The notes beneath the pieces are model-generated. The model did no database searches. It was given only the letters and a program-made list of their open reading frames with translations, and was not told the origin of the DNA. A stretch of DNA of 64,000 nt from Auanema rhodensis (taxonomy: Eukaryota > Animalia > Nematoda): NCBI GenBank assembly GCA_964057225.1, contig OZ059894.1:9052001-9116000 (forward strand). Direction: 5' to 3'. A program made the position numbers and the translations under genes. The first letter of the stretch is position 1. The number at the start of each line of letters is the position of its first letter. Below, piece after piece: positions 10,003-62,214 of this stretch.

Positions 10003-10012
10003 GGGAGGGAGG

Positions 10013-10066
<54 letters not shown>
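10003..10066. repeat. (GGGA)n(GA)n microsatellite
   Basis: Directly visible compound purine repeat. Confidence 0.95.
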
Positions 10067-10067
<1 letters not shown>

Positions 10068-12405: not shown

Positions 12406-12439
<34 letters not shown>

Positions 12440-14989: not shown

Positions 14990-15047
<58 letters not shown>

Positions 15048-15260
15048 TCTCTATCTCTTTTTGAAGACAGATTATCTGAAAACAACAGGAAAAGAAACTT
15101 TCCTTTAAAATATTGTTAATTAGATCGTTATTGCTTTAGCTACTTTCTAAAGATATTCTTCATGTATCCTTTATAATTCTCCTTTTTTTTGCAATGTTTT
15201 CTTTTTTTGAAATAAAATTAATGATGAATTTGCATACAGAGATAGAAGAAGTGCTATAGA

Positions 15261-15302
<42 letters not shown>

Positions 15303-35479: not shown

Positions 35480-38400
35480 TTAAAGATCGATAAGCTTTAA
35501 CTCTTCTACGTCTGAAGCACTCTTCTCTTCGAACATCGGATTTTGAATTCCACTTGTAATATCTGCGGAGAGATGTTCAGCTTGTACAGCCGTCGGTAAA
35601 ACCAATTCGTCGATTGGAGTTTCGTTTTCTTCTTCACTTTTTAACTGAAATTGTGGATATATAAATTCATTTTTAAAAGCTTTTCAACTAACGCCTTCGT
35701 CGGAAACCTGAGCTTCCTGAACAATCATTTGAATTTCATCGTTGTCTCCTGTTTTAGGAAGAAAGCGAACTGCAACGTATGATGAAACTGAGCTCGTGTG
35801 CTGCATTAGGAAATGTATTCTGAATACAAAAGTACATAAAGCATTCAGAAGTTAGAAGTAGGAACCTTTGTCGTCCAATCGGATCATTATACATTAATTT
35901 CAAAGTGATTGTTGATATAATAATGAGGAATAATATAGATCCAATGATTATCGAAGCTTTAAATAATTATATTGATTTCAAACTTATTCTTACAACTTAC
36001 ATAGCGTGAATGCTTTATCAATTTTACTCATTGTTATCTTAAATTCTTGTATTTTTAGATTATTTCCTAAATTACTTAGTATGTTTGGAACATGAGAAAT
36101 CTTAAAGTACTCAGTTGCCTGTCTAATTTGTACTCTAAATAGCCAAGTATATCGCTTATGGGTCCTTCTTCGAATGCAACTTCGTCGTTTTTCTTATAAA
36201 CTACAATCTGTAAATGAATATACCGGAATTTATAATGGGAAAATAGTGAAATACACCATGTATACCTGATAGGTTGAAGGAGTTTCATCATCATCTAATC
36301 TGTCAAACTCATAACCGTAATTTTCGTTCAAAATTGGATGTTGTTGAAAAAACTGCAACAGAAAATAGAAAGAAATATGTATGAATGTGTGAAGAAAAAT
36401 GTAATTTTTTGAATTTTCAGTAAACCTGGTCAATATCCTTGTGAACAGACGAAAAGCCAATATCATAGCCGACAAATTGAACTAAGCCTCCTGAAGATTA
36501 AAAAAAATGTCGGAAAGAAAAGAAATTTTAAAAATGATGAAAAAACGATAAATTTGCTAATATTTCCTTACCGCAGATTGAACAGCAATGACCAGTTGGC
36601 TTCACTCTGTCAATACATTCAGCTCTTGATTCACATGGAATATATGGACATAACAAAGACATCGTCTATAAAGTGCAGATTTCCTGTCATAAATGTTAGA
36701 AATTCCTAGAAATTTGATGCTATTTCAAGAAATTACAAGCAGCTTCGTCGTATCTTTTACTTTTTCACAATTCATGCTTATGCATTCGGGACAAAAATAT
36801 AAATAAGCCTAGCTATTTCGTTCTCAATTTATTTGACTCATTGCCATCAAGTGCAACCTTCTCTTATCCATTTTTTTCTCTCACATGAATATTATGAAGT
36901 AAAATTTGAGTTGAACATGCTTCTAGTGATGAAACTATATATATAAATTCTGGTGCCCGAAGCAATTGGCCTATTGTGTCCTTTTGAAATCATCAGTCCT
37001 GACTTAATTTCTTTCTCTTTTTCTTAGATACATATCAAGGAAATTTAAACACATCGCTTGTTGCCATCTTTCTTCATTTCGTAGAATTGAACGTCACATG
37101 TGTTTAGCGTTACAATTTTTTTTGTAATTTATGAATAATCTAATCAGTTGTTTTAGTTAATGAGGTGCAGCATTTCCTCAAAGTTTAAAGAACGCTCTGA
37201 GAAGCTTTTTGAAATTTCCTAATTGTGTCAAATACAAAGCTGAAAGAGCTACTTACCCCATTGTCCATGTTTGGATTACGTCGGCCCAGCATACTCTCCA
37301 GATGAGTTAGACCTCTATTCTTTATAATTAATGGCTCTGATTTGGGTGTTATTATCTCTAAGTCATCAATAGTTTTTATAACGGCTAGAGAATGTCCTAA
37401 TGAGACCTGAAACAAATATTTTGACATTCAAATCAAATATGTTCTCTGAAACGGATACCTTGTATTGTCCCTCAACTGAACTCACAGATTCAAGGAACGA
37501 ACGTGTGGTTGGGCTCTGAAAAAAGCCAAAATAAATCTTAAGAAATGTAATAAATTACATTTTCAGTATCAGGAAATGAATTTGACAATTTTCAAAAAAG
37601 TTTTTCTATTATTAGCTGAATTATAAAAGTTTTCTGAACATTCGCACTTTATTTGTGTCAAAACCAGTTAAGGACATCAAATTGTTTCTCTACGTAGGGA
37701 GATTCGTACGAAATGCCTTAATTATACGTATAAATAGAATAAATTTTGATGAATCCGTTTTTCTGTATATTTTCATTATGTAGCTTATGCTTCGTTTTCG
37801 TTTCTGTTTCCAGACAGTGATGGCTATTCATGAATCTGCTCCGAATAAAGTGTCTTGTCTCTCTCTCTATATGTATAAGTAGTGTCTGGAAGTCGTTCAA
37901 GACTTCTTCATATACAGTTTCATCCAAAACGATATTCAATATGAAATGATAGTCTGGTTGAAAAGCTAAGAAGACAAATTAAAGTGTATTTAGTTGGTTG
38001 TTCGTCGGAGTGCTCGTCAGACACTCTCTTTCCACTTATCCTTTCCACTTTCTCAAACATTGTCTGCTGTCACATTCGATGTCTGAAAGACATTTAACGT
38101 CTAGACCTTCAGAAAACCGTCATCTCTTTAGCCTATCTATCTTCATTTCATCCCTCTCACCGTCTTTCATCTTTTCTATACCATTTTTCTCGAAGATAGT
38201 ACCGCCATCAAATGACAACATCTTGTATCTGACTGAGTGCTTACAGTCTGAGTGCGACGTCAATCACCTATTTTTCATGTTCTTTCATGTTAAAGTTTAT
38301 TTTTGATCTGTCAATCTATCGAAACCTCAAATTCAATATTTCCATATCAGTCGTTTGCTAGTTTAAGAAGTTCTTTCTCTATACGGCTACAGCTAGAGTT

Positions 38401-41400
38401 TCGTCTTACTCATTTCCTCTTCCACATTTCGCTTTTTGTCTCTCAGCATCTTTCATTAAGAGTTCAAAATTTGATCCAAAAAAAAGTTTAATTGCTTCTT
38501 AACATCTACTTAACTGATATAACAATTAAAAGTTTCTGAGCTTATCATCATACGTATTCAAATGATCAGAGTGCAACGTTCAAGATGAATGATGTTTGTA
38601 TAGGTAAATACATCACTTTGTCCATAATTTCAACAAGCACTTAAAAACGTTATTGGGATGATTAAGCTCATTATTGAGCAGAAAGAATGAGCAGAAAACT
38701 TTTGTATTTTTCTTCTTCGTAACCCTTCAATATTTTGTTTCTTAGAATATGTGTCATCTTTTTGAACTTCTGGTCTCAGAAATTGGTTAAACATTCCGTT
38801 CAATTTCCGGATCAGCTGGACTGTTTCGATTTCTGATTTTAGAAATTCTATCAAATAAAAGAAAAAAAACATTTCTTTTAATTATTTCATAATTAAAAGA
38901 AATGTTTGAAATTCAATTCTGACTTATCATGAATCTAATGCTTTTATCATTTTTCTTGCTTCAGCTGGTTAGCAATATGACATTTGCTCTTTTGATTTAC
39001 CAATAGTGTCATGTTATTCTTGCTTGAATAATGAGAGAAGATGGACTTCCAGAATCCTGCATGATTTCATATATGAGTTGGCATCATCATGTCACATAAC
39101 TCATTCATCCTTATGCATTTTCCTAATTAGATATATCCATATAATAGCTTTGAATCATAAAATCTTAGGAAATGAATATATCCAACAGAAATCTTAAAGT
39201 TGCATACCGCTTGCATAACACATTCCGTTTTTCGCACACTTTTCTTCTTTGCTTCTCATCTTTGTCCATATATTCTGTATCAACTTTCCGCATCTTCGAT
39301 GGTAATTTTCTAATCTATATGAAATTTTGTGCTTATCCTTCAATTCATTCATCTTAATAACGAAAGAAAGTCCGAACAATTTGTGATCATTGGCCAATGC
39401 TCTAAACTGGACATGCTTATGCTGCTTTAAGCTCGTCATTTTCAGTTTATTGACTGGCAATGGACAATCAATTTTCACAAAACTGATTGGATAGAATAGC
39501 TTGCAGCATTTTGAGAATATTATGATAAAATGATCCAATTATGGATTTTGTAGGAGAGCTACTTGACACGGAAGTTGTGCTCTTCTTAGTGGAGATGTCT
39601 TAGTCATCATAACTTCCGTGAACTCGTCGGCTTCAGAGTTCTAAACCGTTTTTACGTCTTCTGCTATTTAAACGAATTCAATTTTGTCGTTCATCAGCCG
39701 GATATACGTCCAACTGATCCTCCAAGGAGTGCAGCTGCTCATAGATTGGTCATATATGGAGAGCAGCCTGATTCCTTTCTGTGGAAATTCCATTCTCATT
39801 AAACCTATGAAACTCGACGAGCCTCAGACAATTTTATTTGAACCAGATTTCTTTCATACTTTATTTGTCTTTTTTTTTGTTTAGCAGTTTTTTGAACTTC
39901 GATATATTTTTTTTGACAGAATAATAGTTTTATGAACAAGATAGAGAGACCTAATAGTGTAAAAGAATTAGAAAAGTTGGAAGAGCAAGAGAAATATGAG
40001 AAAAGTGGAGAGTCAGCTAGATTTAGACATCATCTTTGTCAGTCATCATGATCGTTGTTTTTTGGTAATTTTGAACAGTTGTCATGTTTTTTAATATCTT
40101 AAAAATCATCAGGAAATCTCCATTTGAGACAAAATAATCAATTATTTTCGAATTTCTAGAGTATTCCTGGAAATGTTATAAGAAAACTTGTTATCATTTT
40201 ACCATTTTTGGAAACAAAAAACGAGTTAGACTATTAGAAATCAGATGTACTCCGTTAATTACTACCTGAAAATCCAAAAGACATTCAGTGTATATTACTC
40301 ATTTCCATCACTTCAAAACGTTTTTTCATAATCCATTACATAAAACAAAACAAATTTCTGACAAGACGAGAAATACAAGACAATCGCTGTTGGAGGTACT
40401 TGATTGCTGTCCGAGTTCGTCAACTTATCGCAGTTGAACAATTGTCTGTCATGAGTGTATGAAGAGCTCAGGTGACACTCTTAGATTTTCTTCAACTGCT
40501 GACCCGAAAGCCGATATATAGATGTGTAGAACAACTAATGTATGTATGTATATATCTCTTTTCTATTCTTATCGACGACATCGAGCGTACACGTATATAT
40601 CATGTGCATGACGGCGTCATCTTCTATACTTTACTCCTCCTTACACCATCTTATTCATCGTGTTTTTCGGATGATCTTTCTTCTTTATCTGTCTGTACTG
40701 TATTAACCATTTGTTTTTCAAGTGACACGTGAAAATATATATAATGGTAAGAAAACGAAGCTTTGTTAACATGCGAAAAGTAATAGACACATTTTCGACA
40801 TCCATGATTGACAAAAAAAAAGAATTTTCAATTGGAGCTTTTTCTAAATTGAGACTCCTTTCTCCCGTTCTTTGTCAGAAGATTATTCCCGACATGCTGT
40901 TTTCATTTATAAGGTTTATAAGTTTATAAGGCTATGCAGAGCTAGATGAAATGAAATTTTCAAGTATATGCCATGCACCGCAACAAAAAAAAAGTTTCAG
41001 AAGTAGAACTTGAATGAAGTGGCTATGAATAAATACACAATACGAGTTAAATATATATATATATTTTTGTACAAACTTATTTATATACATATTATTGATT
41101 ATTTGTAGAAATATTCAAATCAAATACTGGAACTGAATGATTATGAATTGTAGTCAAAGATAAGATCATTCTTTGAAGCTTTGACATTATTTTTCTTTTT
41201 TTTTTGCTCTCAGCAAACATAAAAAATTTTTGAATCATACGGTGTTCTCAGCTACTAACAACTTACTGTCGTACTAGTATGCTTATCAGACGAACTATAA
41301 TATTAATTTCTTCATCATTGTTATTAAAACATGTAGTTCAAATCATCATATAATATACTTAATTATATAATAATTTAATAAAATAATATTAAATATATAC

Positions 41401-42136
41401 AAATATATATTTAACTAATCATTCTAATAAGTAATTTTCATCTTATTCACGTATGTTGACGTGTAAATATGCATATTGCTTCCACGTAACTACGTGTCCA
41501 TCATGCTCATTTTCATTTTCCAATTGACATCTCACCATGAATGGTTGCATCTTCGTCTTCTTCTTCTTTCTTTTTTTCTTTTCTTCTTCTACTTCCACAG
41601 AAAAAAAAAACTTTTTATTCCCATTTCAAGACTTATATATCTAAATCTTTGAGCTTTTTATATAGCTGCAAAAATATATCAAAGCAATGACACTGCAAAA
41701 TCTGTGAAGCTGACGGTATGGGGTATGCCTTCTTGTCTATTACTATTCTTACAATTGACGTACATACAATCACATACTTTACTGAATAATCACTGGTGTT
41801 GTTTATCCAGATTTCTCTTTTACGATTTCTGATCTCTTACAGCTAGGTACCAAATCATTTGGTCAGTCGATGCTCTTTAAACTTAATTTTGTTTCTCTTT
41901 TTCACTCTATATGTCAGGTTAAAACAATCTGGCCATTTCGGATGAATTAATACTGAAAACTAAGTTAAAGTGCGAAACTGGAAATCCTACTGATGAGTTG
42001 AATCTTTTTCTTCTCTCCCTCTCTCTCTCTTCAAATTTCTCGTTTCTATCTGTCGTTCTTCAATATCTTCAGGATTCACTTTCTCAAAGGTATCTTACTT
42101 TCTCCTTCTAATTCTCAATTCACCTCTTTTTTCCAA

Positions 42137-42169
<33 letters not shown>

Positions 42170-44485
42170 TCCTCTCTCTCATTCACATCTTTCCTCTTGG
42201 CCAACCTCTGACAAGCATATTCTCTTCATTTCTCCAACTTTTCTCTCTTCATCTTCATTGACTTAATAGACACACATACATGCGCACATTTGCTCGTCTT
42301 GTTCGAATCAACTACTTATGTTCATTGTTCTTCTGCTCAAAACTTCTTGTACTTATTCGTTTTCATGTGTGATTGTCTTGTCTTCAGATCAGTCTAATCT
42401 AGCCATTTGCTTTTCAAACATGTAGAATCTTATCTTCTCACCAGATTGAGAAAACTAGTTTGATTAGTCCTTATTCACAGGATAATTTGGAACCGAAAAA
42501 CTACACAAATTCACTCACAAGACTAACAATCGCCTACAATATTGAAAAAAGTTTCGAAAAGGACATATCTCAGAATTTGTATTTCAAATTAGCACAACTG
42601 TATAACATGATGACAATAGATCTAGAATTACAAGCACTTATCCAAGTGTTAAGTTGAACCGAGTGGATAAGTTTAGATGCTGTAAAGGGTGAATTAGAAA
42701 AAAAGAAGAAAAGTAAGAGGAGAAGTATTGTCATCAGTTACGCGAACATTCTATCCGTGTTCGTTAGATCAATTTCTATATCCCCAAGAAGATTTACTCC
42801 TCACCAAAGCCTCATATTCGTCTTCCTTGAATATATACATAAATCCATCTTTTTTTGTAATTATTGAAGATCTGTTTATGAATTTCCGACGTCTTTGAAA
42901 TATAAAACGAATGAGCTATTTTGATTTCATTGAATTTTATCTATTATTATCTAATTATTCTATTGAATGTTATAAGGTATTGAATGGAAGAGTGAGGTAC
43001 CTTAAATCTCAAAAGCTCGACTCTTCTTTGGTCTTAAAGTGAGAAAATGAAAAAGAGATAGAGAGGAAGGGAGAGGAAAAAGAAGAGAAAGAAGAAGAGA
43101 AACTACGATGCTGGTATGCCGAATGAGCAGAGAAAAAAAGATATAAAGCCTGTGAGCGATAAGCTTTTTTAAAGAAAAGGCAAAGTCTAGACAGCAGCCT
43201 TGCAATGTCGCTGATGATGATGTATGAGCGTATTCGCTAAAGTTAACAGCAAATGAAAAGTAATTTAACGTTATGTTATGAAGAAATGAATCACTTTTCT
43301 AACATGTTTCTCATCTTTCACATGTTTAAAGTGGTTGGTCTAGTCGAATTTTCAATGAGTTCATCCAAATATATTCAGCTGATAGTAGTAGAAGTTGCTG
43401 AGTAATACTCAATTTGCTTATGACCTTTTGTGCTATTGAACTCGACGACCAATAACATAAGTGAGGGGCAAGTGACTAGAACGATAAGCAAAGCTTTAGC
43501 AGATATCTGAAGCATCTCCAGCACAGTGAAACTTGATCAGCTGTGCTCAGGAGAAACTTCAGCCTGCCGTTTATGGAGTCGGGCTATCCTGAAAGAGTAG
43601 GATTTTTCTCGTTCAGCAACATCATTTCAGCTACCACAATTTAAATTTCTTCTTCAAATGCACATGCTCCGAACTATTATCGGCGACACTACAAACGTTT
43701 TTCTGTCTGCTATCCTCTCTCATGGTTCTTCAGCATGGATCCCTTTAGTCCATACATCTGAGATCTACTCAAATATCACACTACTATCGTTTTGAATCTG
43801 CAGCACATCTCATTTGAATTAATGCTTCTAATTCTTCATTGAATTCCGTGCCGACTTTCGTTGTCTTCGTTTCATCTCTTAACTTTCCCTGCTTGCCATG
43901 TACCAACCCAGCATGCAGAGCTTTTTCTATTCAAGACAAATTATCATTTTTACTTCAATTTATTATTTTTCTTGCCATTGAACTATGTATCGCCAAGCTT
44001 AGTACTTGATTTATGAAAATCCTCTGTGACTTCTCAGACATTCTTAGGCGAGAACACGTAAACGGCTTTATTTTTCATCATTTCTCTTATTCTTATTCTT
44101 TTTTTTTCTTCAACATTTTTCCTGTTGATTTTTCTCATCTGAACAAGCAACAGGAACAACTTTGCTATTACCTATTCTTTGCTTTAATTTGTTTTTTTCC
44201 TTCACAACTTTTCAAAGAAAGAGGATATCACTACATACTACAGATGATATCTATATAGCTTGAATTATGATTATACGATTACATTTCGTTAACATATTCT
44301 TTTGAGCGAAATATTTAGTATAACTGAAATCAAATTTTTATTTTATTTAGACTTCAACGCTATTTATGTGTACATATCCATATATTCAAGTATACATCAT
44401 ACCCAATTTCTCTCCCTCTCTTTATCTCTCTCGATTTCTCTCTTTTATATATTTTTTTATTTTGTCACATTTCTCTCTCTCTCTC

Positions 44486-44567
<82 letters not shown>

Positions 44568-47500
44568 TCTCCTTTTTTCAGCCATTGAATAGCTTTAGTA
44601 ACTGATTGAATGACATCATATATTTTTTAATGAGCACTAATTTGTCACAATATACTATATTATACTTGTTACATCACAATGTTTTTAATATTTTCAATTA
44701 ACCTTTAAATATCCGTGAAATATTATGAATGAAAACAATAGCAATAGCTAGTTTTCTTTGATAAATTTGCAATTTATCTAATTTATAAATGTTTGATTTT
44801 GAATTATCAAAAACTTAAATATAAAAACAATTTTATTTTCATGGTATGACGAAAAGCAAATTGTAACATTTTCATATTGTATTGTATTCAATCAGATTAT
44901 TTTCTAAATTATACATTCATAGCATGAATGCAAAAACTTATAAGTTATATAATTAGATTTAAAAGATTCATTTCTCTCGCAAAATCGCTGTTTATCTCTG
45001 TCTAACAGTTATGTAGTTCGGATTGAGATATAGAGTGTATGAGTTAGCTTATGAGTAAGTAAGAAATCCTAGGAGAACAAGAGAAAGGGAAAAATAGAGA
45101 GAGGGGGGATATAGAAAAAGTAGAAAGGATAGAGAGAATGACAAGGAGAAAGAAACATCTCATTTTTCTCTTCGATATATCAAAAACTATTTGACTATGT
45201 CAGTAATACGTTATTTGTTGGTCCACATATAGATGCATTGAACCCCCTAGTCTAGTAATGTGTCAGCGTAACTCGTCGTTTCAACCTATACCAGCATATT
45301 CTCCTTAAAAAGCTTTGTTATGTCACTTTCACATCTGTGCACTTTTTGACAGATTTGTCATTTGCAATCAGTTATTGCTTCTTCCGCTTTTGGGTCACTC
45401 ATTTTTACAAGATTTAGGATATAGCCTAAAGAACTTGAAAACATTGAATTTCCTCCAGAATTTTTTTTTCAAATTTTTTTAAATCCAAAATTCGTTTTTC
45501 GTCTTTTTATGTCTGTTTCTCTTTACTTCTTCCCACTCCTCCTCCTCCTCCTCTTCACCTTCTACCCTCTTTCTCGCCCTCTCTCTTTCTCTTCTCTGAA
45601 GGCAGCCTTCTGTTTTCAGAATTATAATAATCAGTTGGTTTTGAGAAAAAACTACGAAAGAACATCGACACACGAAAATTGAAACTTATGCTGCAGAGTT
45701 GCATCAGCTGTTTGTAAAATTCGGAAATGAAGCTTCTGCTTTGAGTACAAAAATCTTTTAGAACATCGAAAGAACGAAGAAAATTTCATTCAGTCAGAGC
45801 TACGAATTAATCAACGACCTTTTTGTCAACAAAACATTCCTTTTAGGATAATTCTGTTAGTAAAATCTATAGAAATACAGAGTTTAGTCATGCACCTTCT
45901 TCAACCCACCCTTACATCTATTGAACATAAATTCAACAACCCATTCTCATGTGATTTACATTTTCAGTTAAACTCAAGTCAAGTTGAACAAAAGCTTGAA
46001 TCTGTAAACAGTTGCTCTTTTGATGTCAAGACACAAAAAATGCCGGCTATCATAAGAAAGATGCATCACAAACGTTAATATTCGTTATACATTGTTGTTC
46101 TTTGACTTGCATTGAAATATTATTTCTTTCGGCACATCATCATCTCTTCAGTCATGTGAGCATCTCATTTGAGTAAAGCTTCAAGAAATCGTCAAAGAAA
46201 TATCTTTTAATGAAATTAGGATTCTGTGTTTCTTTGGACGAAGACGACGCACGAGCGGCAAACGAATAATGGAGAAAAAAGTAACAAGCACGCATGGTGA
46301 CCAAACTATAAAATTAAAGAGATGAAGAAAAAAAAAGAAGAATATACACAAATAGTCTTCGTTCTTATGTCACAAACATCAAAAGCTTTTGACTTTTCTC
46401 TCATAATTATGTGCAGGAACTGTTCTTCAGCACATAGGCTTTCTCTCCTCCAAAGCGAAGATAATCTAAGTGATGCTGCTGTTGTTGCAAGACAAGCTAG
46501 CTAGAAATACGGGAACACGAATGAGATTCGGATGTTACCGTGCTGCAGCAATAGTATGCTGCTATGCTTATAAGCTTTTTCTCTCTCTGCCTTTCAAGTG
46601 TGAGCCAGCTTTCAGTTTTTGTGCCCCGGAAAAGGCCCAGGAAGCGTTATCCATATATAGAAATGTTGTTTATCCCTTTTCTATATCATAACTGAAGAAA
46701 GTTATACCTACATACATGTATAAGTATCTATTCAGATCTATATAGTATGTTCCACATCGTATATTTTCGTAACTTAAATAATTTTTTTCCACAATTCATA
46801 TAAAACAGTTTTTCAATCACTCAGTTTTCTTTTATTCTCAGATATTCTCTGACAATATTTTTGATTGAAAAGTAGTAAATCTAGCTGCAAATCCGAAAAA
46901 AAACTTTTAAATATTAAAAATTATATGTTTATTTACAAGATATTGCAAGAATTCATATGAAATCTAGCAAAACTGTGCTGGGAAACGACGCGATGACAAC
47001 TTGTCGTCGTCATATCGCCGATTATTCAGCAGAAAAATCACTATCTGATAGGATGAGCATATTTTCAAGTGTAAACGTTGAAAGAGATAGATAGATAGAA
47101 AAAGAGAACAATAGAGAGAGAAAAAGATATATAGAGAGGGAGTTGTTCAATCTCAACGGATCGTCTTTGTGGCCTTCCGTGTTTAGACTAGCGGAGCTCG
47201 CCGCTATGAGGGAACAAAAATTTTCTACACAAAACCCAAAAATTCAAGAAGACAGAAGCGAATGGCAAGAAGCCAAAGACAGAAGACGAGAGACAAAACG
47301 CCTACCTAGCAGTATCTCTTTGAATTTTTACAGGAAGTGTAATTTCCAATTCTATAATACTCAATGCTCTACCTCTTCAAAAGGCCAAGAGGCTCAAACG
47401 TTTTCGTGTCAGCCAAGATAATTTATGTATTTATATCTCAACGTTTCATCTTTTTTTATTTTATTTTGTTTCACTTTTCCTTAGAATCTACATACATCTA

Positions 47501-50500
47501 TCTCTATTCTACATCATTATCAACATTATGATTTTTGCTTCTTCACTTATCAATATCAATATCTGCTGAATGTTAAGTAAGTAATCTCAACTCACCGAAA
47601 GTAGGCGGAACGCGAGGATTGATCCTATTCTATTTCAAAACGTCAAATATCCAACACTCATCCTCATTTGCCATTTTTGCATCACGATCACGAGTTTGTC
47701 TGATTTTGAAAATGTGAGGCAAGTCCCGGCTATTTCAGTCTCATTAACTTTAGTTTTTCGTTTTCCAAATAACACAACGAAAATTTTTTCGTCTCAAGCC
47801 AAAATGACTATGAAATTAAATCATCACAAAAGTTTTTGGTACATATTGCCTACCACCACCTTCGAAATACATGTATCAAATGTTTCTTCTTTTTCGAGTT
47901 TGTGTTTTGAAACAACAAAACTTTTTTATAGCACCTTTGAGATTCAAAAAATATATTTATGGCAAAACTATATATAAATATTATATAATTCAACATTTAG
48001 TACCATTTATAATTATTTTTTATAGAAGCTATATGTGCATGAAACAGCTTAATTAAGTGAAATATATGTAAGTATCTCACTTTCAGAAAAGAGACTTGAT
48101 GGGAAATGTCAAAACGTATTTCTAATTGCACTTAGAATTCAAATCATCAGCTGAGCAACTTAATTATTTTGCCCACGTTCAAGTTCAACACTCGTTACTC
48201 AAAAACAGTATGATCTTAGAAAAAGTGTGATCAAATGAGATTTTCCGAATTACTTTCTCAATCGAGTTCATCGAATACTGTGCTCTCTCTCTCTTTCTCT
48301 CTCTGGCTCTTTTGACTGAAAAAATCAAACTATTTACTTTTTTTTTCTTCTATGCTGTTTTCTCCTTTCAATATTTATGTTTTTACTCACATCACTTTTT
48401 CTTTTTGCGTGTTGACTCATGTTCAAAGCTATCTTCGGAATTTTTTCTACTTCTTCTAGTATTCTCAATTTTTTCTTAATTATTTATTAATTTTTATTTA
48501 TTTTAACAAAAAAAAAAGAATATTTTTCATATTCTCTTAAATTTCAAATAACGGCATAAAATAACTGATTTATGCTAAGCCTACAAGCGTCGTAGATTAG
48601 GCTTGACGTTCAATTGTACGTGAACGTGCACGTGGACGCACATTTTTCATTTTAATATAACTAGACAGCGAAGATCGGTTGCATATTTATATTAGAATTA
48701 GTTAGTTGAACACATATAGTCATTGGTATGTGTTGTTATGCTTATATCCTTTTCTATATCTTTAAAAATCATTTATTGTTTCACTTGTTCTATGATTAGC
48801 ACTTTAATAACTGCGGTGGTTTTTCGAAAAGTTGCAGCTGCTCCCTTAAATTCACACAATAAATAGAATTTCAGTAGCAGAGTACACGGAGAACAAAAAA
48901 ATGAATTTAATCGGCAATCAAGTATGGACATTGTGAAATAGCTTTCAATTTTCAAGATAAATATTTTTCATCTATCCACCTCGTTTATTCTTGAAAATAT
49001 TGAAATTAGAGGTTAGAACGGGAAAGGCAGACTACTTTATGATTTGAAAATAATGAGTATTAATGTCTTATATTAATAATAATTTATTTGAAATGATATA
49101 AATCACTTAAATCATCTAAAATCCCTGATGATTAGTGGCTTCATTCAACGGTTTATTGCAGCCTTTTGCCATTTTCGTATTATTCTCTCTCTTTGTTTCA
49201 ATTTTATTTCAAAAATAAACAATTTCTCAGCTCTTCGCTGTATGTGATCGTGTTCAGAAATGAATTTAATCCAATATATCGAAACTATTTTTAAGTTTTA
49301 TTGCTCTCTGTTCCTTCTTTTTGGCATCATCACCACATGACCGCTCAAAGTTTCCGTCATCAGGCCACCCACAATGCTTTAATCTTGATCGAAAACCATT
49401 GCAAAAATTTATGAAGCATTTCATTTTATTTTCGAACTTTTACCTTTTTTAGCTTATATAAAATGAAATTGTTGACACAGCATAGAGTTGGCACTTTTCG
49501 AAAACGCTTTCAACGATAAACCAAAAATCCTCCGAAAAATTTCTCAAATTTCGTCAAATCTTTTCAATAGAAAATGTGCTTCACTTCACGAGCCATGTTC
49601 CCAGGTATCTCAGAACATAATAAACATTTCTATTTTATTATTTTAAAGGAATTGGATCATTAATAAGACTTATCTCGATAAGCTATTTGAACTTGAATGT
49701 CCTTTTCAGGATTCCAAAGTTCATTCATAACTAAGCGCAAAGCGAAAGCCATTGTTGCTAACTTTGAGGCGAAAAAATAAAATTCAAATTAATTGTAGCA
49801 TAATATAAATATTAAATGCTAATTATATTATCAATTATAAAAGTTATAGTATATTGAAAATAAAATAAGTCATTTCATGTTTTAACGCTGTTTGGCAAAT
49901 AAATTCAGAATACTATCTCGGAGTATTTCCTTTTTACAGCTATTTTTTTCTATTTCCCAAGGTGGCGATTTTACGTGTTACTTTCATGATCAATAGATTT
50001 GTTTTATTGATAAACATGATTTGAATCTAGGAGTTCATAAAACAGGAATATCCGTTTGTTTTCGTGAATGCTTAACGTAGCAAGCTTCAGTTTGATGAGA
50101 TTGACCTAATAGCCTGAAAATTACAAGTTCAGATTTACTCTGCTTCCCTCTTCAAGCGTTATTTGCCAGTTTCTATTAGTGTTGTCCTCATTATTTCAAT
50201 TACTCAAGTGACAAACTTCAATTAATACAGTGTCTCATTCAAATATTATTCACTTCACACATATACATAGATGTATGTAGAGATTTAGGTATTTTTAAGC
50301 CTTGCTAGCTATTTGTAAACAAATGCCCTAAGGGGAGTTCTCTATTATGATCTCATCACATCACTTTGAAAAAAATTTTCTTTTCTAAAATGTAATACGC
50401 TGCAAGTTTGATATGCATAAAGACGGTACCGGAAAAATTATAATGTTTAGTATTGGAAAGACGATCGTCATAGTCAGTCAGCTTTGAAAAGATATCAGAA

Positions 50501-51908
50501 TTGAAAGTCACATTTCCATCCAGTTTCCGTTATAGCTCCGGTTATATGATATGAAATGATGTGCTCATACGCATATACACACATATATGTATATGAATGT
50601 AAATGTATGATGATATCTAATCGTGCTTGTTATCACAATATTTCGACAGACTCACAGAAAGCCAAAAGATATTTCCTACTTCATCTCATAGCCTACTCCC
50701 AGCCAACCGATATTGTATCAGAAGCAGGGATCAGATTGCTGTACATAGCATAACTATTTATATCAAACTGGCTTTTACATACTTGCAGCCGTTGTTGTGC
50801 CGCAACTTGTCTCACCGAGCAACCCGATACGTAGACCGAATTTCAGTACGTCTTAGACCTTTTTTTAGAAACACGTAATGTATACTTTTTTCACTTTTAC
50901 GTCACTTTTTCACACAACAATGATTTTTTTATGATTTGTTTCTTGAAACTGTCAACTATTTGATAGTTTCAGGGCATTTCTTTTTCTTTTTTTTTCTTCC
51001 ACTTCTCTTTGGGAGTATCCCTATTCCTAAACTTGGATTTTGAATACAATAATGATTTTCTTACGGAGTTCAAAGATAAAGGGGATTTACGTAAAACTCA
51101 TAGATTAATGCACTCTCATACTCCATATTTAACTTTTTTCAAACCAAAAGTTCAGAAAAACTCACAAAACCTCATAAAATGCTTGAAAAATTATGTCTTT
51201 AGTTATGAGGAAGAGAGAAGATTAGTACATTTGTGCCACAAAAAAGATTAAATCACAAAAGAGAATGAAAAACAGAGCACAAAGGAAGGAAAGATGATAC
51301 TAGCAAAGGTTAAATAGTTTGTTGATGATGCCATCGCTCCGGAAGTTACTATTTCATCTGAGAAGTCACATTCTGTTTTCTGTTTGAATTCAATGTTCAC
51401 ATACCTTTTCTTTTTGACATTTTTCAAGATTACCTATTCTCACCCACCACACACCCTTTTACTCTGTTTTCTTCAACCTAAGTTTCAATGTTCTATTTGG
51501 TTCACATAGGTTTTTTTCTGTTTTCATTTATTAATCTGATTCAAATAAACGGAATTTTACAATGTAGAGGGTGGTAGTTACGAATACATAAAAAATTCAG
51601 TAGCACGTATTCTGAGACAAGACTAGAGTGCTTGTTCTTTGTTTTCTCAGTAAGCTGAGGTAGAAGATTTTTGTCGTATAATTTTCCCATTCATGTCCTC
51701 TCTGTACCATATTTGTCTTCGATGTCCCGTATCTGTTAATGCTTTGCCCTCAATGCTGGTTCATCTTTCCTCTCTTGGGCTCTCGCTTTCACATTTCCTA
51801 CTTGTTTCATTTACATCGTCTACTCTTTTCCTTTGCTTTCTTCATCTCTCTTTCTCTTCTTTTCTCATTATCGTTTCCTCTCAATTTATCGTTTTTCTCA
51901 TGTTTTGT

Positions 51909-51939
<31 letters not shown>

Positions 51940-54900
51940 TATCATTTTCTCCCAATTGTTCCAGAAATCATTTTCTTGGCATAGCTAACCTATAGGTAGA
52001 TATGAAGGAAATTCTCCAATTTCTTTATTGACAATATGAATATTAGAGTTTTCTACTGCCAACTGACACAACCAAATGAAATAGAGAGGCTAGTTTTGAA
52101 AAATCTATTCACACCCTTCATTTCGTGTATATAAGCGAGCAGAGTTTCAAGTCACAATGATGAAAATGGAAAAATAGACGAAAGTTTTCACATGTGTTTA
52201 TGTATGTGTAAGTGATAATGAAGAGTGAAATCATTGAAAATAGAATTTCGGGGAGGGGAACGGAAGACAGATGATGAAGAATATATAAGAAGTAACGAAC
52301 ATGCTCCCAACATCCGAATAATATCTTAAGGTTTTATATGTTTCTGACAAGAGTGCAAAACAATCGTCGCACATATTAAGGTAGACTCTGCTGTATTTCA
52401 CAGATTACGTAGAGTTCAAAACAGAACAGAAACTGTCTGAAATGAGAAGAAAAAAGTCGTTTTTCTTCTTATTTCTGAGGACAACTTTCTGCATAATTCT
52501 CACCTGACGGGTATTCTTTTAAAATGTTTTTCTCATTTTTTTTTCATTAACTGTTTGGAATACCTTTTTACTAACTCTTTGCTCTTCCTTCCTCTTAATC
52601 GGAAACTGAATCCACTTTCTCAAAATTCATCTTCGAGCAATTCACGTAAAAACAACTCTTATATCTTCTAGTAGACGATTTTTTTTATTTTCTGCTATAC
52701 TACTTACTGGAGTAGCTTTTGAGATTTGTTATACTAGCCACATCACGCTTCTCTACTCGTCGTAACAAACATTACTTCTCATTTTTATAGTTTCATCGAG
52801 AGCAAAACTTTAAATTTCGAAAAATAAAAAAAGTAATCAGAATCAGGCGTCTGTTTTCTTTGAACTTTTTTACATCAGTGCTCGAACTGTCTCTCCTACG
52901 TTTTTCGTTTGAAGATATTAAGCTTCTGCTAGTAATTCAGTTATATCTTCTTCTGCCTTGCAAGGATATAAAATGAAATTTGTCTTTTTCGCTTTTTCTC
53001 GTGGATTTTTATTCAAAAAAAAAGTGAGATATGTGTTAAGAGCATAATATAAAGTTCTAATATTATGAAGATAATGCTGGAAAGTCTGCAAAAGCGTTAC
53101 TAACAATACTTCCAGCATTCTATTATTATCCGCATAGACTACATGCTGCTATAATTGGTCAAATCGAAGCGCATTACCGATGTCTGGCTACTTGCAAACT
53201 GAAGATGTTGAATAACCATTTAAAACTCTCAGCTCATAAAGCTTCAAAAAGTTAAAGAACAGCAGTTTTCTCTATATTTAACTTGCTTTTTGACATCATG
53301 TACTTCTAAGCTATTTGTTTGCAATGGATAAGAAATGAGAAGTTGAGTTCAGAAGTTTCAAATCGCCGTTAAGCACATAGCAGACTTCAATCATCTTTCC
53401 TTCTTGCGTTTGCCCAGTCAACTAACTTCCCAGATGGCCTTTCCCACCTTTTTCTCTCATCATCTTTTTCATGTTCTCTTTAACTTCACATATATTGGGC
53501 TGTCTCTCGCAAGTCTCTAATAGATCTCTGAGATATCAAACTCTCTCTTTCTCCGCTCCCCCCACATGAACCCTCCCTCAATACCGCCATTTCTACATTT
53601 GTTGCTATTGTTTTTCGATCTTTGAGTCTATTACGATTGAACTTTCCTGAATCTTTTAAAAAGTAATTCGACCCATCAGCTTCAAAATGAAATTTCCCAA
53701 TTTAAATGAGGAACAACAGTTTTCAATGTTGTAAACTAGAAAAAGCTTCATAGACTTCGTCGGCAATCGCATCTCTGCTCATTCGCAACCTCTTATTCCC
53801 GTTGTCTTCTGTCCAGCTCTCATGAATAATTTATTGTCTTCAACGCTGAACACCACAAAAACTTTGTGCCACATCAGAAGGCATTCAAGTTGATCATTTC
53901 TGATCGTCAACTGTTGTGTTGTGCATTCTTTATTCACTATTCGAAACAGTCTCCTCGATTGAATTTCAAAACATTTTACTCCAAAATATTCACCAAATTA
54001 CCTCATGTTTGTCTACTTCATACTCTTACTATACACATATTATGCTTATGTCTGTATCATGCCCACATCAACAATTGTTTCCAGTCTCTATAGTCTAAAT
54101 CGAACCAGAGTTATCAGGCAATTATTTTGGATTATTTTGAAATGTCGTCGTTAGAATATAACTAAAATGTTCGTTTTCTTTTACATCTTTTGACAGTTGT
54201 AGCATTTTAATATTTTATTTGAAGAATATGAAGCCGGGATATATATTTATTATAGAAGATGTTCGATGTTCTATAGAAATATGTATATATAACTAGATAT
54301 GTAGCTATATTGCTATTATTAGTCGACAATTCAATGATTTTTCACTCAAATTTTATACATTATTTCCTAACATGCATATAATATATATATTGTTTATAGT
54401 TCATTGTATGGGAGATTGAAAAACCAGCATTGTCTCTCCTTTTAATCACACAAAACCATAATATGCTTACTTGCGTACTTTTTATAGTTTCTCTGATTTT
54501 GTTGTGAAAATCCAAAGTTGTTAGTAATGCGATGAGATGAGATGAGAAGTTGCATCGTGATTGAGCAGCTAGTTCGTTTGTGTTTCATTTCACTTCCCCC
54601 ATTCATAACTCAGACCGATATCCGGCAAGCTATAACAATACGTAGCTGGATTAACGAGACAGTCTTAGCTCTGACCCTGGAATGCGTGATGATTCATTGT
54701 GCTTTCACAGCCAGCATCATGATGACAGTCGTTCGGTCTTTTGTCTTATCCCAACGTTCTCTTACACTCATCTCGCAACCATCACAGTATTTCGCTTATT
54801 TTCGGACATATCTACGTCGTTTATCCGTATGTGAGTTCTAACGAAAGTTGTTTGCGCGTCATCATCAAATCTTGTGCATTTATCACAAAAAGGTTTGTGA

Positions 54901-57900
54901 AATTATAGTTTTACAAGAGAGGCTTAAACGAAATAGAGATAAAGGATGGGAAAACTGGTGAGTTAATGGGTAGCACAGTAGCGTATGCTACCAACGTTCA
55001 CTGACAAAGAGAGATGTATAGTTAGTTCCTCCTTCTTTTTTTCGAAAAGAAAAAGTTGGAATGATTATATAAACCATTGAAAACGTTAAATAACCAAGAG
55101 TCATGGTAAAGCTTCAAACTACTCTCATGGGAGCATTAACAACCAGTCAGTCTGCGAACCCTAGAATTCTCTACATTCCATTTTCTTCACCTATTTTCCT
55201 ATTTTTGAGAAAGTTCTCGATTCGAAAATTTGTTTTTTCGTTTTCGTTTCTGGTTTTTATTTGAACTTTTCTTTTTATCTTAATGTACATACATACCTAG
55301 AAGGATAATTCTCAATTGATCCAACAAAACTCTTATGAATATACCGTTATTCGTCACTTGATAGAAAACAACATAAAAATAAAAGAAACAAAACGGATAT
55401 GTGAGAAATGTTTAAATCCAAAAATAGAAAACAGTGATTTTTGCATCATAATAAAGGTACGAAACTTCTTTCTCATTACTTTAATTTCATACTAATTGAG
55501 TTTAACACCATAATGTTGTTATTCGTTCTTCGCACTCTCAGTATTTTCTTGACAGCACAATAATGGCACTTTATTCTATATTCTTTGCCTTACTTTCTCT
55601 CTCTATCTATCTTATTCTTCTTTTACTTCTTCTTATCACTCCCTCGTTCGTTCTCTCAGATATTTGAAGATTTTCGGATGAAAGGGAATAAAACATGGGT
55701 GTGTACTTCATCTCTTCAAGTAGTTAAACTGCTTGTTTAGAAAAAAATGTTTCTGATGTCTTATGGGTCATTGCTAGACGCACTCTGTCTTCTTCTTGTG
55801 TTCCGAGACTGAATACTTTTAGATGTAAACTCGAAACATACATTGTATCTAATACATGCAGAGTAATTAACTCATCTTCGAATCATATAATTAAAACAAA
55901 TAATCTTAACTATATGATCTATATTCACATTTCATTCTTAATCATTCCAAATAATATTTGTGATTTTCGTTTTCAAAAACTTCACGTGCGCCACGTGAAC
56001 TGCGGCAGACGCATTTTGCTTTTAAGCGTCGCACTAAACGGTTAGCTTCTTCCTCTTCAACACCTCTCTCATTTTTTTTCCATTTCAGCATCTTCATGTA
56101 TTTCTAATTCTTTTATTTCATATTTATGATTAGAGTATGTTCATTAATTTGAAAAATAATATGAATTTCATATTCTGGTAAGATATTGATATCTCGTGTT
56201 TTTTTTTTCGAAAACCTTTTTTTTTCGTTTAAACTACTCAAATATTTAAAGCAAACTATTTTTCAAAATATGAACTATTCTGTGAATGTTTTCAACCAAT
56301 TTAGTTGTCCTTTAGGATAACTCATCGTTTTTTGTTGTTTTTGATGCCATTGTAGTACATTATACACCTCTTGTAGTTCTATTAACCATTTTATACACAT
56401 ATATTCTCAATATATATCTCAATAATATAATTTTTTTTATCTTAAAATGTTTTTTGTATCACTATCTATTACGTTATAATATACGTTACAGATTTGAAAG
56501 TTACAAAAATGAAAAAATCGCGTCGATGAACTACGATTATGGCCAATACAAGTCTCCCAAACTGTATCGTGATACTTCCCAATCCAGAACCTTATGTGTA
56601 AATTTATAATAATTTAATTTTTGAACATAAAGGAAGGTATGTTCAGACAATTTTCACAAATTGTGAACGGATGGATGACGACGATTTGCGTCGTGTTGGG
56701 AAGTTCCTTCAATATGCATGGTATACACAGCGTTATCATGAATGCTGACAAAGTGAGAAGACAGATGATTATTGACAACTCACTTCGATATTACAGAATC
56801 GTGGAGTTGTCCTAGGCGTTTCAATGGTTTTTCTGGGATTATGGGATACGGTTCTATTATGGTGTGCCTTCTTCTATTATGGTATCAAGCATATGCCATT
56901 TGGCTTCGTAACTTCTGAAATTCTGAACCAGCTCACACCATGGTTTCATGCATTTTCTCAGATTGCCAATACAGCTTCAGTAAGTAATTTTTCATGGCTT
57001 TGTTTCATTTTATGAAAGCCAATACTACTAAAAACACTAAGTTCGGACTGAAAGACATATTCAAGTTGCTGTGACAATACCAAGTTACTTTCACCCAAAC
57101 GTGAACGAACAAAAAAACTTATTTGAAATTAGTTTAAAGGAAATTCTTCCGCATAAGTATTAGAATAAAGTTGTTATATATGCGATTTTTGAACTAACAA
57201 CTTAGCCAGAAAGCGTCTTGCAGACTTAATGCTGCTGCTCTTCAAGCTTTACCACATAATGACGGGTTTCCGTTCTGAATACTTGATTGCACGTTAAATT
57301 CTCCGCATGGAACTTGACATCCAAAAATTTGCACAACCATATGCTAATCAGAGGATACAGAGAAAAGTTCGAAACTTTTTAAAACTTTTTTCTTTTCATT
57401 TAGCGCAAAAAGTTAAAATAGAATATATGATTGCCGAATAATTCAAACTTTTTTGAATAAAATGAAAGAGATTTTGTGTATGAGGAGGGAAACAAAATTT
57501 CCACAAACAGATTTCTCAGATTTTATGAGAATATACATTACAGATATGGTGTGTAGTAGCTATTACTCTACAACGATTCATGGCTACAAGAGATCCGTTT
57601 CGTTCTAGTAGGTCACCAGCATTTGCTCACTCATTTCGTAGTGAACGACGTATCTCGTTCATTTCATGTTCAACATATCGACGACTTTTACGGTATATTT
57701 ACAATATAATAGCTAATATAATAAATTATTGTGATTATAGAATGCCTTTCATACTCTCAATCTGTGCCATAATTATAAATGTTCCAGCTTTTTTTGAGAT
57801 TATAGCTCAAGCTTGCTACAACAAAACGCTTAATCGGATGTCGGTTCATGTAAGTTTTCAACTTTGACATTAACTTTGAAATCAATTAATAAGCAGAGAA

Positions 57901-60900
57901 TATGAACATAAATATATGTTATAGCTAATTGTGACACCATTTCGACGGGATGCTGTTTATAAGATGTATCGACTGCTATCTCGTATGATACTTATATCAA
58001 TTGGTCCTAATATATTCATATTATGTAATTTATAAATTATTATAATCAAGTTGGAATATGCTTTTTTCCAGGCATCACGCTCATCACAATCTACATTCTA
58101 AAAGGCTCCAATCGTTCTAGAAGGCAGTTATTTCAAATGAGTGATATGCTGATAGAACGACACGCTTCAAGGTTAGTAAAACTTTTATAAGTTTTCATGA
58201 AATAATTATTATATTTTGATTTTATTTTTCAGGGAAACCACGCAAACCTGGATTTCTATCATACTTGTTTTTAAGTTTTTACTACTTCGAAGTTTAACAT
58301 TTGCGGTAAATTTTAAATATAGCTTGAAATAATAAATTTGTAAATCTTTCAGCTGGATATAATGGAGATGACTATTGGTGTAACAAATTTTTTTGTTGTG
58401 GATATTAGCAATTTTTTACTTATTCTTAATAGTGCTACGAATTGTATTCTATTTTTGAAGGTAATACAACTTAAAAAGCTTAAATTGACGGACAAGCTTA
58501 TCAATGATGTTACTAATCCAAACTTTTCTTAGGCTAAACAATGGATGGATAATCGATGGCATGAAAAGAAAACAATCAAACGTAAGAAAACATTATGTGA
58601 TGCTAGGTATAAAATCTGTTCTTGATGGCAATTATTTTTATTTGTTACAGTCTTTTGCAAGGAGAGAGAGCAGCAATTCTTCATAAAAGTTGGCAAAATG
58701 CTCTGGGGATGACAAATGGCCAGCTTGGCTTGCGGGTTCTGTACTCTATGCTCAGAAAGCATCCAGCATTATTTAATGTTTTCCGGATGCCAAATCAAAC
58801 CATATATTCTACAGAAAAGGTTTGAATACTAGCATTATGAGTATTACAATCATTATCTGCTTTATAGTGTCCCGCAGAACCAGAGCTTGTAGCCCTGCTG
58901 ACAAATGGTCAACGAAGAAGCTTTGATATTATAACAAATACCAAGTAAGTAATTTGTTAATGAGCACTACTTGATGGTATTCGTTATTGTTTTCTCTTCA
59001 GATATCAAGAAGTAGCTGATAGGATAACCTCTTTCATTACGGAAATGATTGACCTCATGATGAGAGGACAACCCGAAGACGTAAGATCAAATCTGATATT
59101 TCATTCACAAAAATGACCAAAAATCTCTTTTTTTCAGTATGTAGTTATGAGAGTCCGTCGTATTGGAGCTATTCATTACGATAAAGGAATTCATTTCTCA
59201 TCGTCAGTGTGGAAAGAATTCAAAAATAGCACAATATCTATTATTGCCGAATGTGATTTCGATTCTCAAGTGGTATGTGCATGTAGTCATAAGCAATACA
59301 ATCAAATTCAATGAAATCATATTTCAGGAACGAGATGCGGCTATGGACGCATGGAATATCTTCACTTCATTCATAATACGGGAAATGAAAATGGGCACCT
59401 GGGCCATTGGCGAGACACTTGGTACTATGCCCTGATTCAATATCAAATTCATAATCATGATTCTTAATATATTAATTTGTTGTATACTATTTCAATTCCT
59501 CAAATATTTTTCCTCAATAGATTTAAAGCAGATAGTTATAGATTTACTATTTTTTTCATATTTCATTGAATAGTTTTCAATTCAAACATGAACGAAAATA
59601 GGTTTTAGATACTCATCTTCACTAGATTAATAGCTTAAAGTTTAGGCTTTAGCGATTTTTTTCTTTTTTTAAACGGAAATCTAGAAGACGTATCTATATG
59701 AACACTGAGAATACGATATACTATATCTCATATCAGATCTCAGCAGTATCGTCATTTCGCCAGTTTTTTTAAACAAAAAAACAAACTTTATTTGTATTTC
59801 AAAGAATTGTAGTTACAATTCTGTAGAAAGTTATAAGATGAACTTGAAAAAAAACAACTTTTCGAACATGTTTGAATTGAAATTCAAGATTTTTAACTTC
59901 TGTGTTTCATCTTCTGCTATTAGAGAGAACACTGTGTATACATACATATACGCTACTCATTGCTTATTACTCAAAATAGTTTGGTCCCGCCACTCTAAAT
60001 ACGGGTTTTCTTTATCAATAATCCCTCCGACTAATTCAGTTGTCAATTATGATCTACATGTAATTTTTATGAACAAAGTTCGTGTCTTTGTCTTCATCAG
60101 ACATCATTCTGATCTCTCAAAAAAAAATACTTGGAATCAATCAAACACATCTACCCAATTTCACATCTTACTTTTGTATAATTTTTTGTTTATTTTATAG
60201 TATTTTTTACTGAAAAATATAAAATTACCAGGTATGAGAATTCGATGATTTGTTTTTTTAACTACGATTTTTTATATATTAAAGTTTTTTTTAAAGTTGT
60301 TCGTACCCGATTATCATATCGAAACTGTCCGATCGTTGTAACATTATCCAGATAGAGTTGAGCACTTCCTTTGTTAAAGACAACTTCATCCTGAAATTAT
60401 TCAAAGATTTTTCCGATTTGAGGATAACAAACTTACATTTGCTCCCGGTATCAACTTCATATGAAGAAATGGAAATTCACCAACAATGATCCAGTTATGG
60501 GGATCATGAAAAGATCCGAAATATATTTCAGGCTCAAAAAATACATCTGAAAAACACAGAAAGGTTTAAACATTTGAAATTACAACTAACGCTCTGGGCT
60601 TTTCCGTCTCTGACATTGGTGAGATCCTTGTTTTCCTATAATACAGTTGTCATTAAAGTATATGACACCTGTATCAGAAAGATCTATCTGGCTTACCTAA
60701 GAAAATAATTGAAATAAATTGAAATACAAAAATCTCACATCAATATCACTATCCAGAACAGCAACAGTTAGCTTTTCTTCTTCAAAAACTATATGATCAC
60801 CTTAAAAATCATACGAAATTGCATACAAATCATCAAGATATCTAACCTGCACAAGGAGTTCCTTCATTCATCCAATTAGCAATTGAACTAATTTGATTAT

Positions 60901-60970
60901 TTGGTACGAATACATACTTTGATCCCAACGAGTATTGTAATAAATATATAAATATTAAGAATAAAATCAT
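35480..60970 (-). CDS. amn: Amnionless (cubilin co-receptor, type I membrane protein), 16 exons, 518 aa
   Basis: Minus-strand exons in 5'->3' order: 60970-60847, 60800-60739, 60696-60591, 60546-60437, 60390-60307, 37515-37459, 37406-37257, 36808-36737, 36665-36572, 36490-36426, 36352-36266, 36207-36111, 36066-36001, 35956-35866, 35819-35693, 35644-35480. All GT-AG, phase-consistent, 1557 nt. The signal peptide is followed by SKYVFVPNNQISSIANWMNEGTPCAGDHIVF (cf. vertebrate AMN [25 protein letters not shown]). Further matches: FHDPHNW...IPGANDEVVF, Cys-rich VWC segment CPYIPCESRAECIDRVKPTGHCCSICGG, TM SIIIGSILFLIIISTITL, and cytoplasmic IQNPMF (FxNPxF-type endocytic signal). The exon-8 acceptor (aaatagctag) is weak. 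Confidence 0.92.
44473..44571. repeat. (CT)n microsatellite, interrupted
   Basis: ~100-bp CT run with CTTT interruptions. Confidence 0.95.
55981..55999. promoter_or_regulatory. Palindromic double E-box (TTCACGTG-CGC-CACGTGAA) ~540 bp upstream of the glb-33 start
   Basis: A perfect 8-bp inverted repeat of two CACGTG cores in a locally GC-rich patch upstream of the gene. The function is inferred only. Confidence 0.4.
56539..59435 (+). CDS. glb-33: 7-transmembrane (FMRFamide-receptor-like GPCR)-globin chimera, GLB-33 orthologue, 15 exons, ~546 aa
   Basis: Exons: 56539-56595, 56633-56752, 56797-56979, 57544-57692, 57741-57849, 57925-58024, 58072-58171, 58233-58305, 58353-58460, 58533-58606, 58651-58819, 58868-58944, 59002-59080, 59138-59272, 59328-59435. 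Seven hydrophobic segments carry rhodopsin-family marks (TM1 GSSFN, TM2 LGLWD, TM3 ANTASIWCVVAITLQRF, TM4 IINVPAFFE, TM7 SNFLLILNSATNC). A globin fold follows: A-helix ILHKSW, B/C GLRVLYSMLRKHPALFNVF (CD1 Phe), F-helix RRIGAIHYDKG (proximal His F8), G SVWKEF, H DAWNIFTSFIIREMKMG. The first exon and start codon are ambiguous. Confidence 0.93.
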
Positions 60971-62214
60971 GATTAGAGTTGGTATGTGACCTCAGGTAGA
61001 CTGAATAAAGTAAATCAATGAGGCAGCCTTGTGCAATTTGATCCACCTAAAATGATGCGTAATATAAACAATTTTTATAAACACATTACATTTCTATCCG
61101 TAAAATATAATAAAAAATTAATTTAATTATAATAATTATTATAATAATTTGTTTTTATTTATTTTCGACATTATTATATTAAATAATATTTTTTTTATTT
61201 TATAGTCAACTTTGCTTTTTTTTAGTTTGCAATGCTCTTTATAGATTTAAAAAAACTTTTGCTAAATTCTTAACTGAATACAGAGAGCTCAAAAATTGGC
61301 TGATTTTTAAATTTTTTTTCCAGTTTTGAAAGATATTTCATTTATTTTTCTGTCATTTTTTGCTGAAAACGGTCTGTCAGAATTTAGATCTTTTGTTTGA
61401 TTTTACTCAAGCTATAACTCGAAATTTTTTGAAGTTTAACTTTCTATATTATATATTTATATAAATATATAAAAATATAAAAAGTTTTGAAACATTCTTG
61501 AACAATATCTAAACTCTTAAGTTTTACATAAAATATTGTGAACTAGAAAGATTAATCACGAAAAAGTTACTCACTCTCTGAACCATAGACATATTACTAG
61601 TTGCTTAAAACTAACGAGTATTTCATAGCTAAGCTTTATCTTCCTCTATCTATTGTCAGAATGGGCCAATCGCACAAAATGTGGTATTAATCTGATCTAG
61701 TTCTCGAGCTTTGTTTAACCAACAATACTTTGTGTCGCTTTTCAAACTGACAAAAATTGTTCTTTCTCTTGTAATGTATTTGCTAAATGCTTATGTTTTA
61801 AATATATATTTTTAATTTTTAGAATACTATCTGTACATTCGATAATTGAATTTTTTCTAATTTTCTTGTTAGTTCATATATTTCATTTTCTTAGTCTATG
61901 CTGATTTATTTGGTGATCAATCAATAATCAAACAATAAATTAACATATGTAAAGTTAACAATATTTTTTTTCAGTCTTCATATTCCTTAAAGAGTGGTTG
62001 CTTTCTATTCAATTTGTTCTTTTAATACAATTTTATGAATAGTTTTCAATATATTCTTTCATTTCAAACTTTTCACTATACAGTTGGCGTGCAATGAAAA
62101 ATGGGTAACACTTGAATATATTTGTTACGTACTTGGTTCAATTCATCGAGACACTTGTATTCCACGACCCTTGCTGCTTTATCTTATTATTCCTTGACTC
62201 CAATTTTGGAAACA

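Follow-up and report, generated by a model that had tools for sequence, protein, structure and literature searches.

Nested gene pairs are widespread and, once formed, not easily separated. The locus analysed here, in a 64,000-nucleotide stretch of Auanema rhodensis DNA (the window; AT-rich, ~31% GC), resembles the intron-nested antisense genes of animals in that the nested gene is complete, has its own ends and occupies, within a single intron, the strand opposite to its host, in a position kept across species. It departs from the usual nested pairs in two respects: the nested gene, glb-33, makes up together with its upstream DNA the whole of a giant intron, and the host, amnionless, is systematically split by annotations. 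Amnionless (AMN, PF14828) is the membrane anchor of the cubilin–amnionless (cubam) endocytic receptor of vertebrates and Drosophila nephrocytes. Its cytoplasmic [FY]xNPx[FY] motif mediates Dab2/ARH-dependent endocytosis (PMC6912373); our literature search found no nematode study of amnionless or of its cubilin partner. The Caenorhabditis elegans gene glb-33 (Y75B7AL.1) encodes a 542-aa protein with a 7TM receptor followed by a C-terminal globin (PMC2228317), is expressed in neurons (PMC2576238) and is mildly induced by anoxia (PMC2228317); the function of the protein is unknown in the published account (PMC13331133). We consider it highly probable that the two genes form an ancient host-and-nested pair, in which amnionless is a single minus-strand gene whose fifth intron holds the whole antisense glb-33 gene and its upstream region.

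The amnionless host gene and its fifth intron

The amnionless model comprises 14 exons on the minus strand, separated by GT..AG introns throughout, with a 1404-base open frame (467 codons) that runs from an ATG at 60970 to a TAA at 35482–35480. Its main features, and those of the gene that it hosts, are as follows.

60970–60847, 60800–60739, 60696–60591, 60546–60437 and 60390–60307, minus strand: amnionless exons 1–5 (together 60307–60970), residues 1–162, signal-peptide-like start (gene model)
37515–37459, 37406–37257, 36665–36572, 36490–36426 and 36352–36266, minus strand: amnionless exons 6–10
36207–36111, 35956–35866, 35819–35708 and 35644–35480, minus strand: amnionless exons 11–14 (exons 6–14 together 35480–37515; gene model, with weak VWC and Amnionless matches in exon 8)
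37516–60306, minus strand: amnionless intron 5, 22,791 bases, phase 0, GT..AG, host to glb-33 (transcript loose ends)
56492–60246, plus strand: glb-33-like gene, 15 exons, coding 56539–59435, 542 aa, 3′ UTR of ~0.8 kb (transcript contig)
37516–56491, no strand: spacer of ~19 kb that separates amnionless exon 6 from the 5′ end of glb-33

The initial annotation had joined five N-terminal exons (60970–60307) in phase 0 to a C-terminal half of eleven (37515–35480) to give one protein. The joining is borne out by the model and by the transcript join described below, and the span, stop and boundaries of the C-terminal half stand; the exon count does not, as nine exons give the open frame. The encoded product has the layout of a type I membrane protein: a hydrophobic, signal-peptide-like N terminus, a large ectodomain, a six-cysteine block (residues 237–262, encoded by exon 8, 36665–36572), one transmembrane helix (residues 348–366) and a 101-residue cytoplasmic tail. 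The start, the ectodomain, the cysteine-rich VWC-like block, the single helix and an NPxF core in the tail are all shared with AMN. Unlike known AMN, the window protein is very divergent and carries only one NPxF, in an IQNPMF at residue 446 whose core is present but whose first position is Ile rather than Phe or Tyr.

Assignment of the host to the amnionless family draws on several comparisons. In exon-by-exon Pfam searches, for which single exons are short, only exon 8 matches Amnionless (E 0.02), at profile positions 207–235 of 442; this is the expected place in the profile, and the same exon has a weak VWC match. Single exons searched against the PDB found no amnionless chain, and exon 7 gave no phmmer match among 1.8 billion representative sequences. 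Comparison with other nematode loci is more informative: the N-terminal half matches that of Auanema sp. JU1783 (E 3e-29), with ~55% identity to exons annotated there as a 152-aa PF14828 Amnionless product, and the C-terminal half matches C. bovis (E 1e-6) and C. auriculariae (E 6e-6). By tblastn, the PF14828 gene that lies upstream of glb-33 is matched by exons 6 and 8 in C. bovis and by exon 8 in C. auriculariae. The minus-strand neighbours of glb-33 in the fetched loci have precomputed PF14828 matches. Through these indirect sequence comparisons, the host gene of the window is probably the amnionless orthologue.

All transcript data derive from four public runs of a single study, used as assembled contigs and examined over 55200–61100. 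The records do not state RNA, but we take the contigs of all four runs to be cDNA because each carries 14 GT..AG joints (those of glb-33, below). Contig pieces on amnionless cover 60845–60990 (exon 1 plus 5′ UTR, which thus extends to at least 60990) and 60436–60546 (exon 4), and include the joint 60696/60739. Contigs of two runs, X2 and X4, leave the genome exactly at the exon 5 donor, 60307, with loose ends of 255 and 29 letters. The 30 displayed letters of these loose ends match 37486–37515 exactly, beginning at the exon 6 acceptor, and this is the sole match in the window with two mismatches allowed; both boundaries are in phase 0. The X2 continuation, at 255 letters, is long enough to pass exons 6 and 7 and enter exon 8. 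Exon 5 is therefore spliced to exon 6 across 22,791 bases as a unit, and the predicted junction from 60307 to 37515 is seen directly in transcripts of two runs. Intron 5 lies at the same position in the protein in the window, C. bovis and JU1783. Its size is unlike that of the other introns here (mostly 42–565 bases).

Public annotations present the gene differently. Seven of them call the N-terminal amnionless exons as a separate truncated gene of 151–232 aa, and in an eighth species, Diploscapter pachys, the exons are uncalled. Automatic annotators had been expected to split the gene, and all seven that call these exons do so. We attribute the truncated or absent calls to the presence of glb-33 in the giant intron, and surveys of the nematode cubilin–amnionless system would therefore miss or truncate amnionless. 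With the layout known, annotators can join the two halves, and each gene can serve as a synteny anchor for the other. The same calls could be read to mean that the halves are separate genes, the join being a rare trans-splicing product or a chimera of contig assembly, and the restriction of the RNA evidence to assembled contigs of one study would allow this. Against it, the join, seen in two runs, coincides exactly with GT/AG boundaries and keeps phase 0; the halves are complementary, follow the domain order of amnionless and do not overlap; and the N-terminal half alone lacks a membrane anchor, its annotated versions ending in intron read-through. We regard separate genes as highly improbable and treat amnionless as one gene in what follows.

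The nested glb-33 gene and its product

The glb-33 contig (2494 letters) aligns in 15 pieces on 56490–60246, all four runs showing 14 joints of the GT..AG type, and its longest frame encodes 542 residues, receptor plus globin. The transcript ends 23 bases after a TATAAA and 60 bases from the donor of amnionless exon 5. At the other end, a TTACAG acceptor (56486–56491) lies just before the first genomic letters of the contig and the five preceding contig letters are unmatched, which suggests that the 5′ end is trans-spliced to a leader. By the contig coordinates, amnionless intron 5 encloses the whole of glb-33, which is read from the other strand and sits at the exon 5 end. The complete 15-exon antisense 7TM-globin gene proposed in the initial annotation is thus present as a transcript within 37516–60306, and in RNA the surrounding host intron is spliced out. 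A 120-aa ORF in the glb-33 3′ UTR returned nothing in a look-up of its exact product.

Intron 3 (564 bases) is the only large intron of glb-33. It contains a block of ~125–150 bases (57210–57352) that is 79–85% identical to JU1783; the remaining introns do not align with that species. The block has no contig coverage and no stable RNA fold (z +1.4), is absent from the other seven loci, and may possibly be an intronic enhancer.

Homologues of the protein were reached by a chain of searches, from a 112-aa stop-free piece of the window to a 186-aa fragment, a 314-aa fragment and then full-length orthologues, of which there are at least 20; the C. elegans sequence did not appear among the hits. 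Identity is 94% to the JU1783 protein and, over 500 aligned residues, 52–69% to the rest of the full-length orthologues (69% for C. auriculariae, 59% for C. bovis and 52–60% for strongylids). Like C. elegans GLB-33 (PMC2228317), the window protein has 542 residues, a 7TM region of ~350 N-terminal residues and a C-terminal globin with a GAxH motif. We assign the gene as the probable glb-33 orthologue, its orthology to Y75B7AL.1 being traced at the sequence level through the C. bovis and C. auriculariae proteins.

The glb-33 exon pieces have no Pfam match, and the Pfam column is empty for all orthologues as well, with neither the globin nor an above-threshold 7TM domain recognized; both domains of the JU1783 protein were therefore folded using orthologue alignments. 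The model of the C-terminal 194 residues (pLDDT 79) is a globin: its best 50 PDB matches are all globins, the first being neuroglobin (E 9e-4, TM 0.74). A profile search gave a weak match to plant haemoglobin, in matching order, and the GAxH motif, with its proximal histidine, is unchanged across 12 orthologues. Residues 1–352 model as a 7TM domain (pTM 0.70) whose best 50 PDB matches are all class A peptide GPCRs (best E 6e-7), and the hydrophobic segments of the window protein correspond to those of this JU1783 domain. From the fold and the conserved histidine, GLB-33 is predicted to bind heme. As the family lacks Pfam recognition, domain-based surveys will miss it.

Annotation of glb-33 itself varies: at the Bursaphelenchus okinawaensis locus (10001–16978) it is split into genes of 167 and 545 aa, and tblastn with the window GLB-33 passes through both pieces in unbroken order.

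Conservation of the layout among nematodes

Conservation was assessed with tblastn and fetched loci. Eight further nematodes, from clades IV and V, have the N-terminal amnionless exons on the opposite strand, 0.1–2.9 kb past the glb-33 stop.

Auanema sp. JU1783: amnionless gene downstream of glb-33, minus strand, 152 aa
C. bovis: amnionless gene downstream of glb-33, minus strand, 171 aa
C. auriculariae: amnionless gene downstream of glb-33, minus strand, 206 aa
Mesorhabditis belari: amnionless gene downstream of glb-33, minus strand, 151 aa
Necator americanus: amnionless gene downstream of glb-33, minus strand, 232 aa
Bursaphelenchus okinawaensis (clade IV): amnionless gene downstream of glb-33, minus strand, 184 aa
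Ancylostoma ceylanicum: amnionless gene downstream of glb-33, minus strand, 205 aa
Diploscapter pachys: amnionless exons downstream of glb-33, minus strand, present and unannotated

The C-terminal half is placed in two of these species. C. bovis and C. auriculariae have a second PF14828 gene, also on the minus strand, upstream of glb-33; it contains the cysteine-rich exon, and exon 6-like sequence is found in it by tblastn (C. bovis) or in an ORF translation (C. auriculariae). In JU1783, Necator, Bursaphelenchus and the others, the C-terminal half was not seen in the fetched 10 kb upstream of glb-33. Full nesting in these species would follow from the geometry of the locus, and in JU1783 the C-terminal half should lie just beyond the fetched 10 kb. 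Beyond the 3′ end of the host, exons of a C2-domain gene (window 33179–34577, plus strand) converge on amnionless, and the last of them share 76–78% protein identity with a C2 gene that adjoins the amnionless C-terminal half in C. auriculariae, in synteny. The layout, for which a comparison with other nematode genomes had been suggested, thus recurs on its N-terminal side in eight further species. Because the layout is common to clade IV and clade V nematodes, we infer that the nesting arose before the two clades split.

These comparisons also bear on the assembly. The spacer is AT-rich and contains microsatellites, so that the spacer or the gene order of the window might be chimeric. Several observations speak against this: blocks conserved with JU1783 keep its order across 42.3–60.9 kb, C. 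bovis and C. auriculariae share the gene order of the window, the C2 gene on the left flank is syntenic and the RNA join from 60307 to 37515 agrees. Misassembly, which had been named as a risk, is excluded by this transcript join and the matching gene order in other species, and we find a chimeric window hardly credible; the nested arrangement is taken as real below.

The C. auriculariae locus shows two features without window counterparts, a 113-aa gene (8766–9186) called between the amnionless C-terminal half and glb-33, and extra 5′ exons (5195–5644) on the annotated 405-aa amnionless gene.

The spacer and the persistence of the nesting

Scans of the 19-kb spacer found neither Rfam matches nor tRNAs, nor any ORF with a conserved counterpart at the fetched loci. 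Four blocks (42299–42363, 46638–46681, 52012–52081 and 52583–52657) are shared with JU1783, in the 10 kb that precede glb-33 there; they are of 44–77 bases, are 77–91% identical and occur in the same order. The blocks are probably regulatory elements of glb-33, and the likeliest role of the spacer as a whole is as regulatory DNA of this gene, which would explain the size of the amnionless intron. A 19-kb region with a few conserved blocks can thereby be marked as the likely regulatory domain of glb-33.

On our preferred reading of an ancient host-and-nested pair, the nesting would be kept since taking glb-33 out of the intron would damage amnionless, and not for a joint function of the products; the intron would be large mainly through carrying glb-33 regulatory DNA. 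Amnionless and glb-33 are probably used in different cells (glb-33 being neuronal in C. elegans), so that antisense transcription would rarely collide.

The nesting might instead have been selected for functional coupling, with antisense transcription making expression of the two genes mutually exclusive, or with both genes responding to heme, B12 or oxygen as a pair for uptake and sensing. In its favour, nine species of clades IV and V keep the layout and its close spacing, with 60–870 bases from the end or the stop codon of glb-33 to amnionless exon 5, and in C. elegans anoxia causes a mild induction of glb-33 (PMC2228317). Conserved nesting is, however, expected without function because any move out of the intron would break the host gene, and nested pairs are thus conserved by default. 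Furthermore, glb-33 is reported in neurons (PMC2576238) rather than in the absorptive cells where cubilin–amnionless acts in flies and vertebrates, and rates of evolution differ greatly for the two proteins, identity between the two Auanema species being 94% for GLB-33 and ~55% for the amnionless N-terminal half. Our literature search found no paper connecting the two genes. Coupling is, in our judgement, very unlikely. About as improbable is the more specific proposal that selection maintains the nesting because antisense read-through from the host gates glb-33, or the reverse, which would link a heme-based sensor of neurons with a receptor for the endocytosis of nutrients.

The initial annotation had offered a co-regulated or mutually interfering pair for heme uptake and sensing, with a neutral rearrangement as the fallback. 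The first finds no support, in view of the default conservation of nested genes, the neuronal expression of glb-33 and the unequal constraint; the fallback fits best, though the rearrangement is ancient. A heme link between the genes is speculation, and nothing that we found supports a functional link of amnionless and glb-33 through heme or B12. The biological value of the locus is accordingly modest, as one more deeply conserved nested pair.

Two minor features of the window concern repeats. Three (TC)n microsatellites of 15–50 copies lie in the giant intron (44472–44571, 42137–42180 and 51909–51939), and such repeats account for the long SLSL-type pseudo-ORFs in the ORF list. Outside the host gene, a 116-aa ORF on the plus strand (19974–20324) resembles by eye a mariner-type transposase in its N-terminal, DNA-binding portion, and is probably a transposon remnant.
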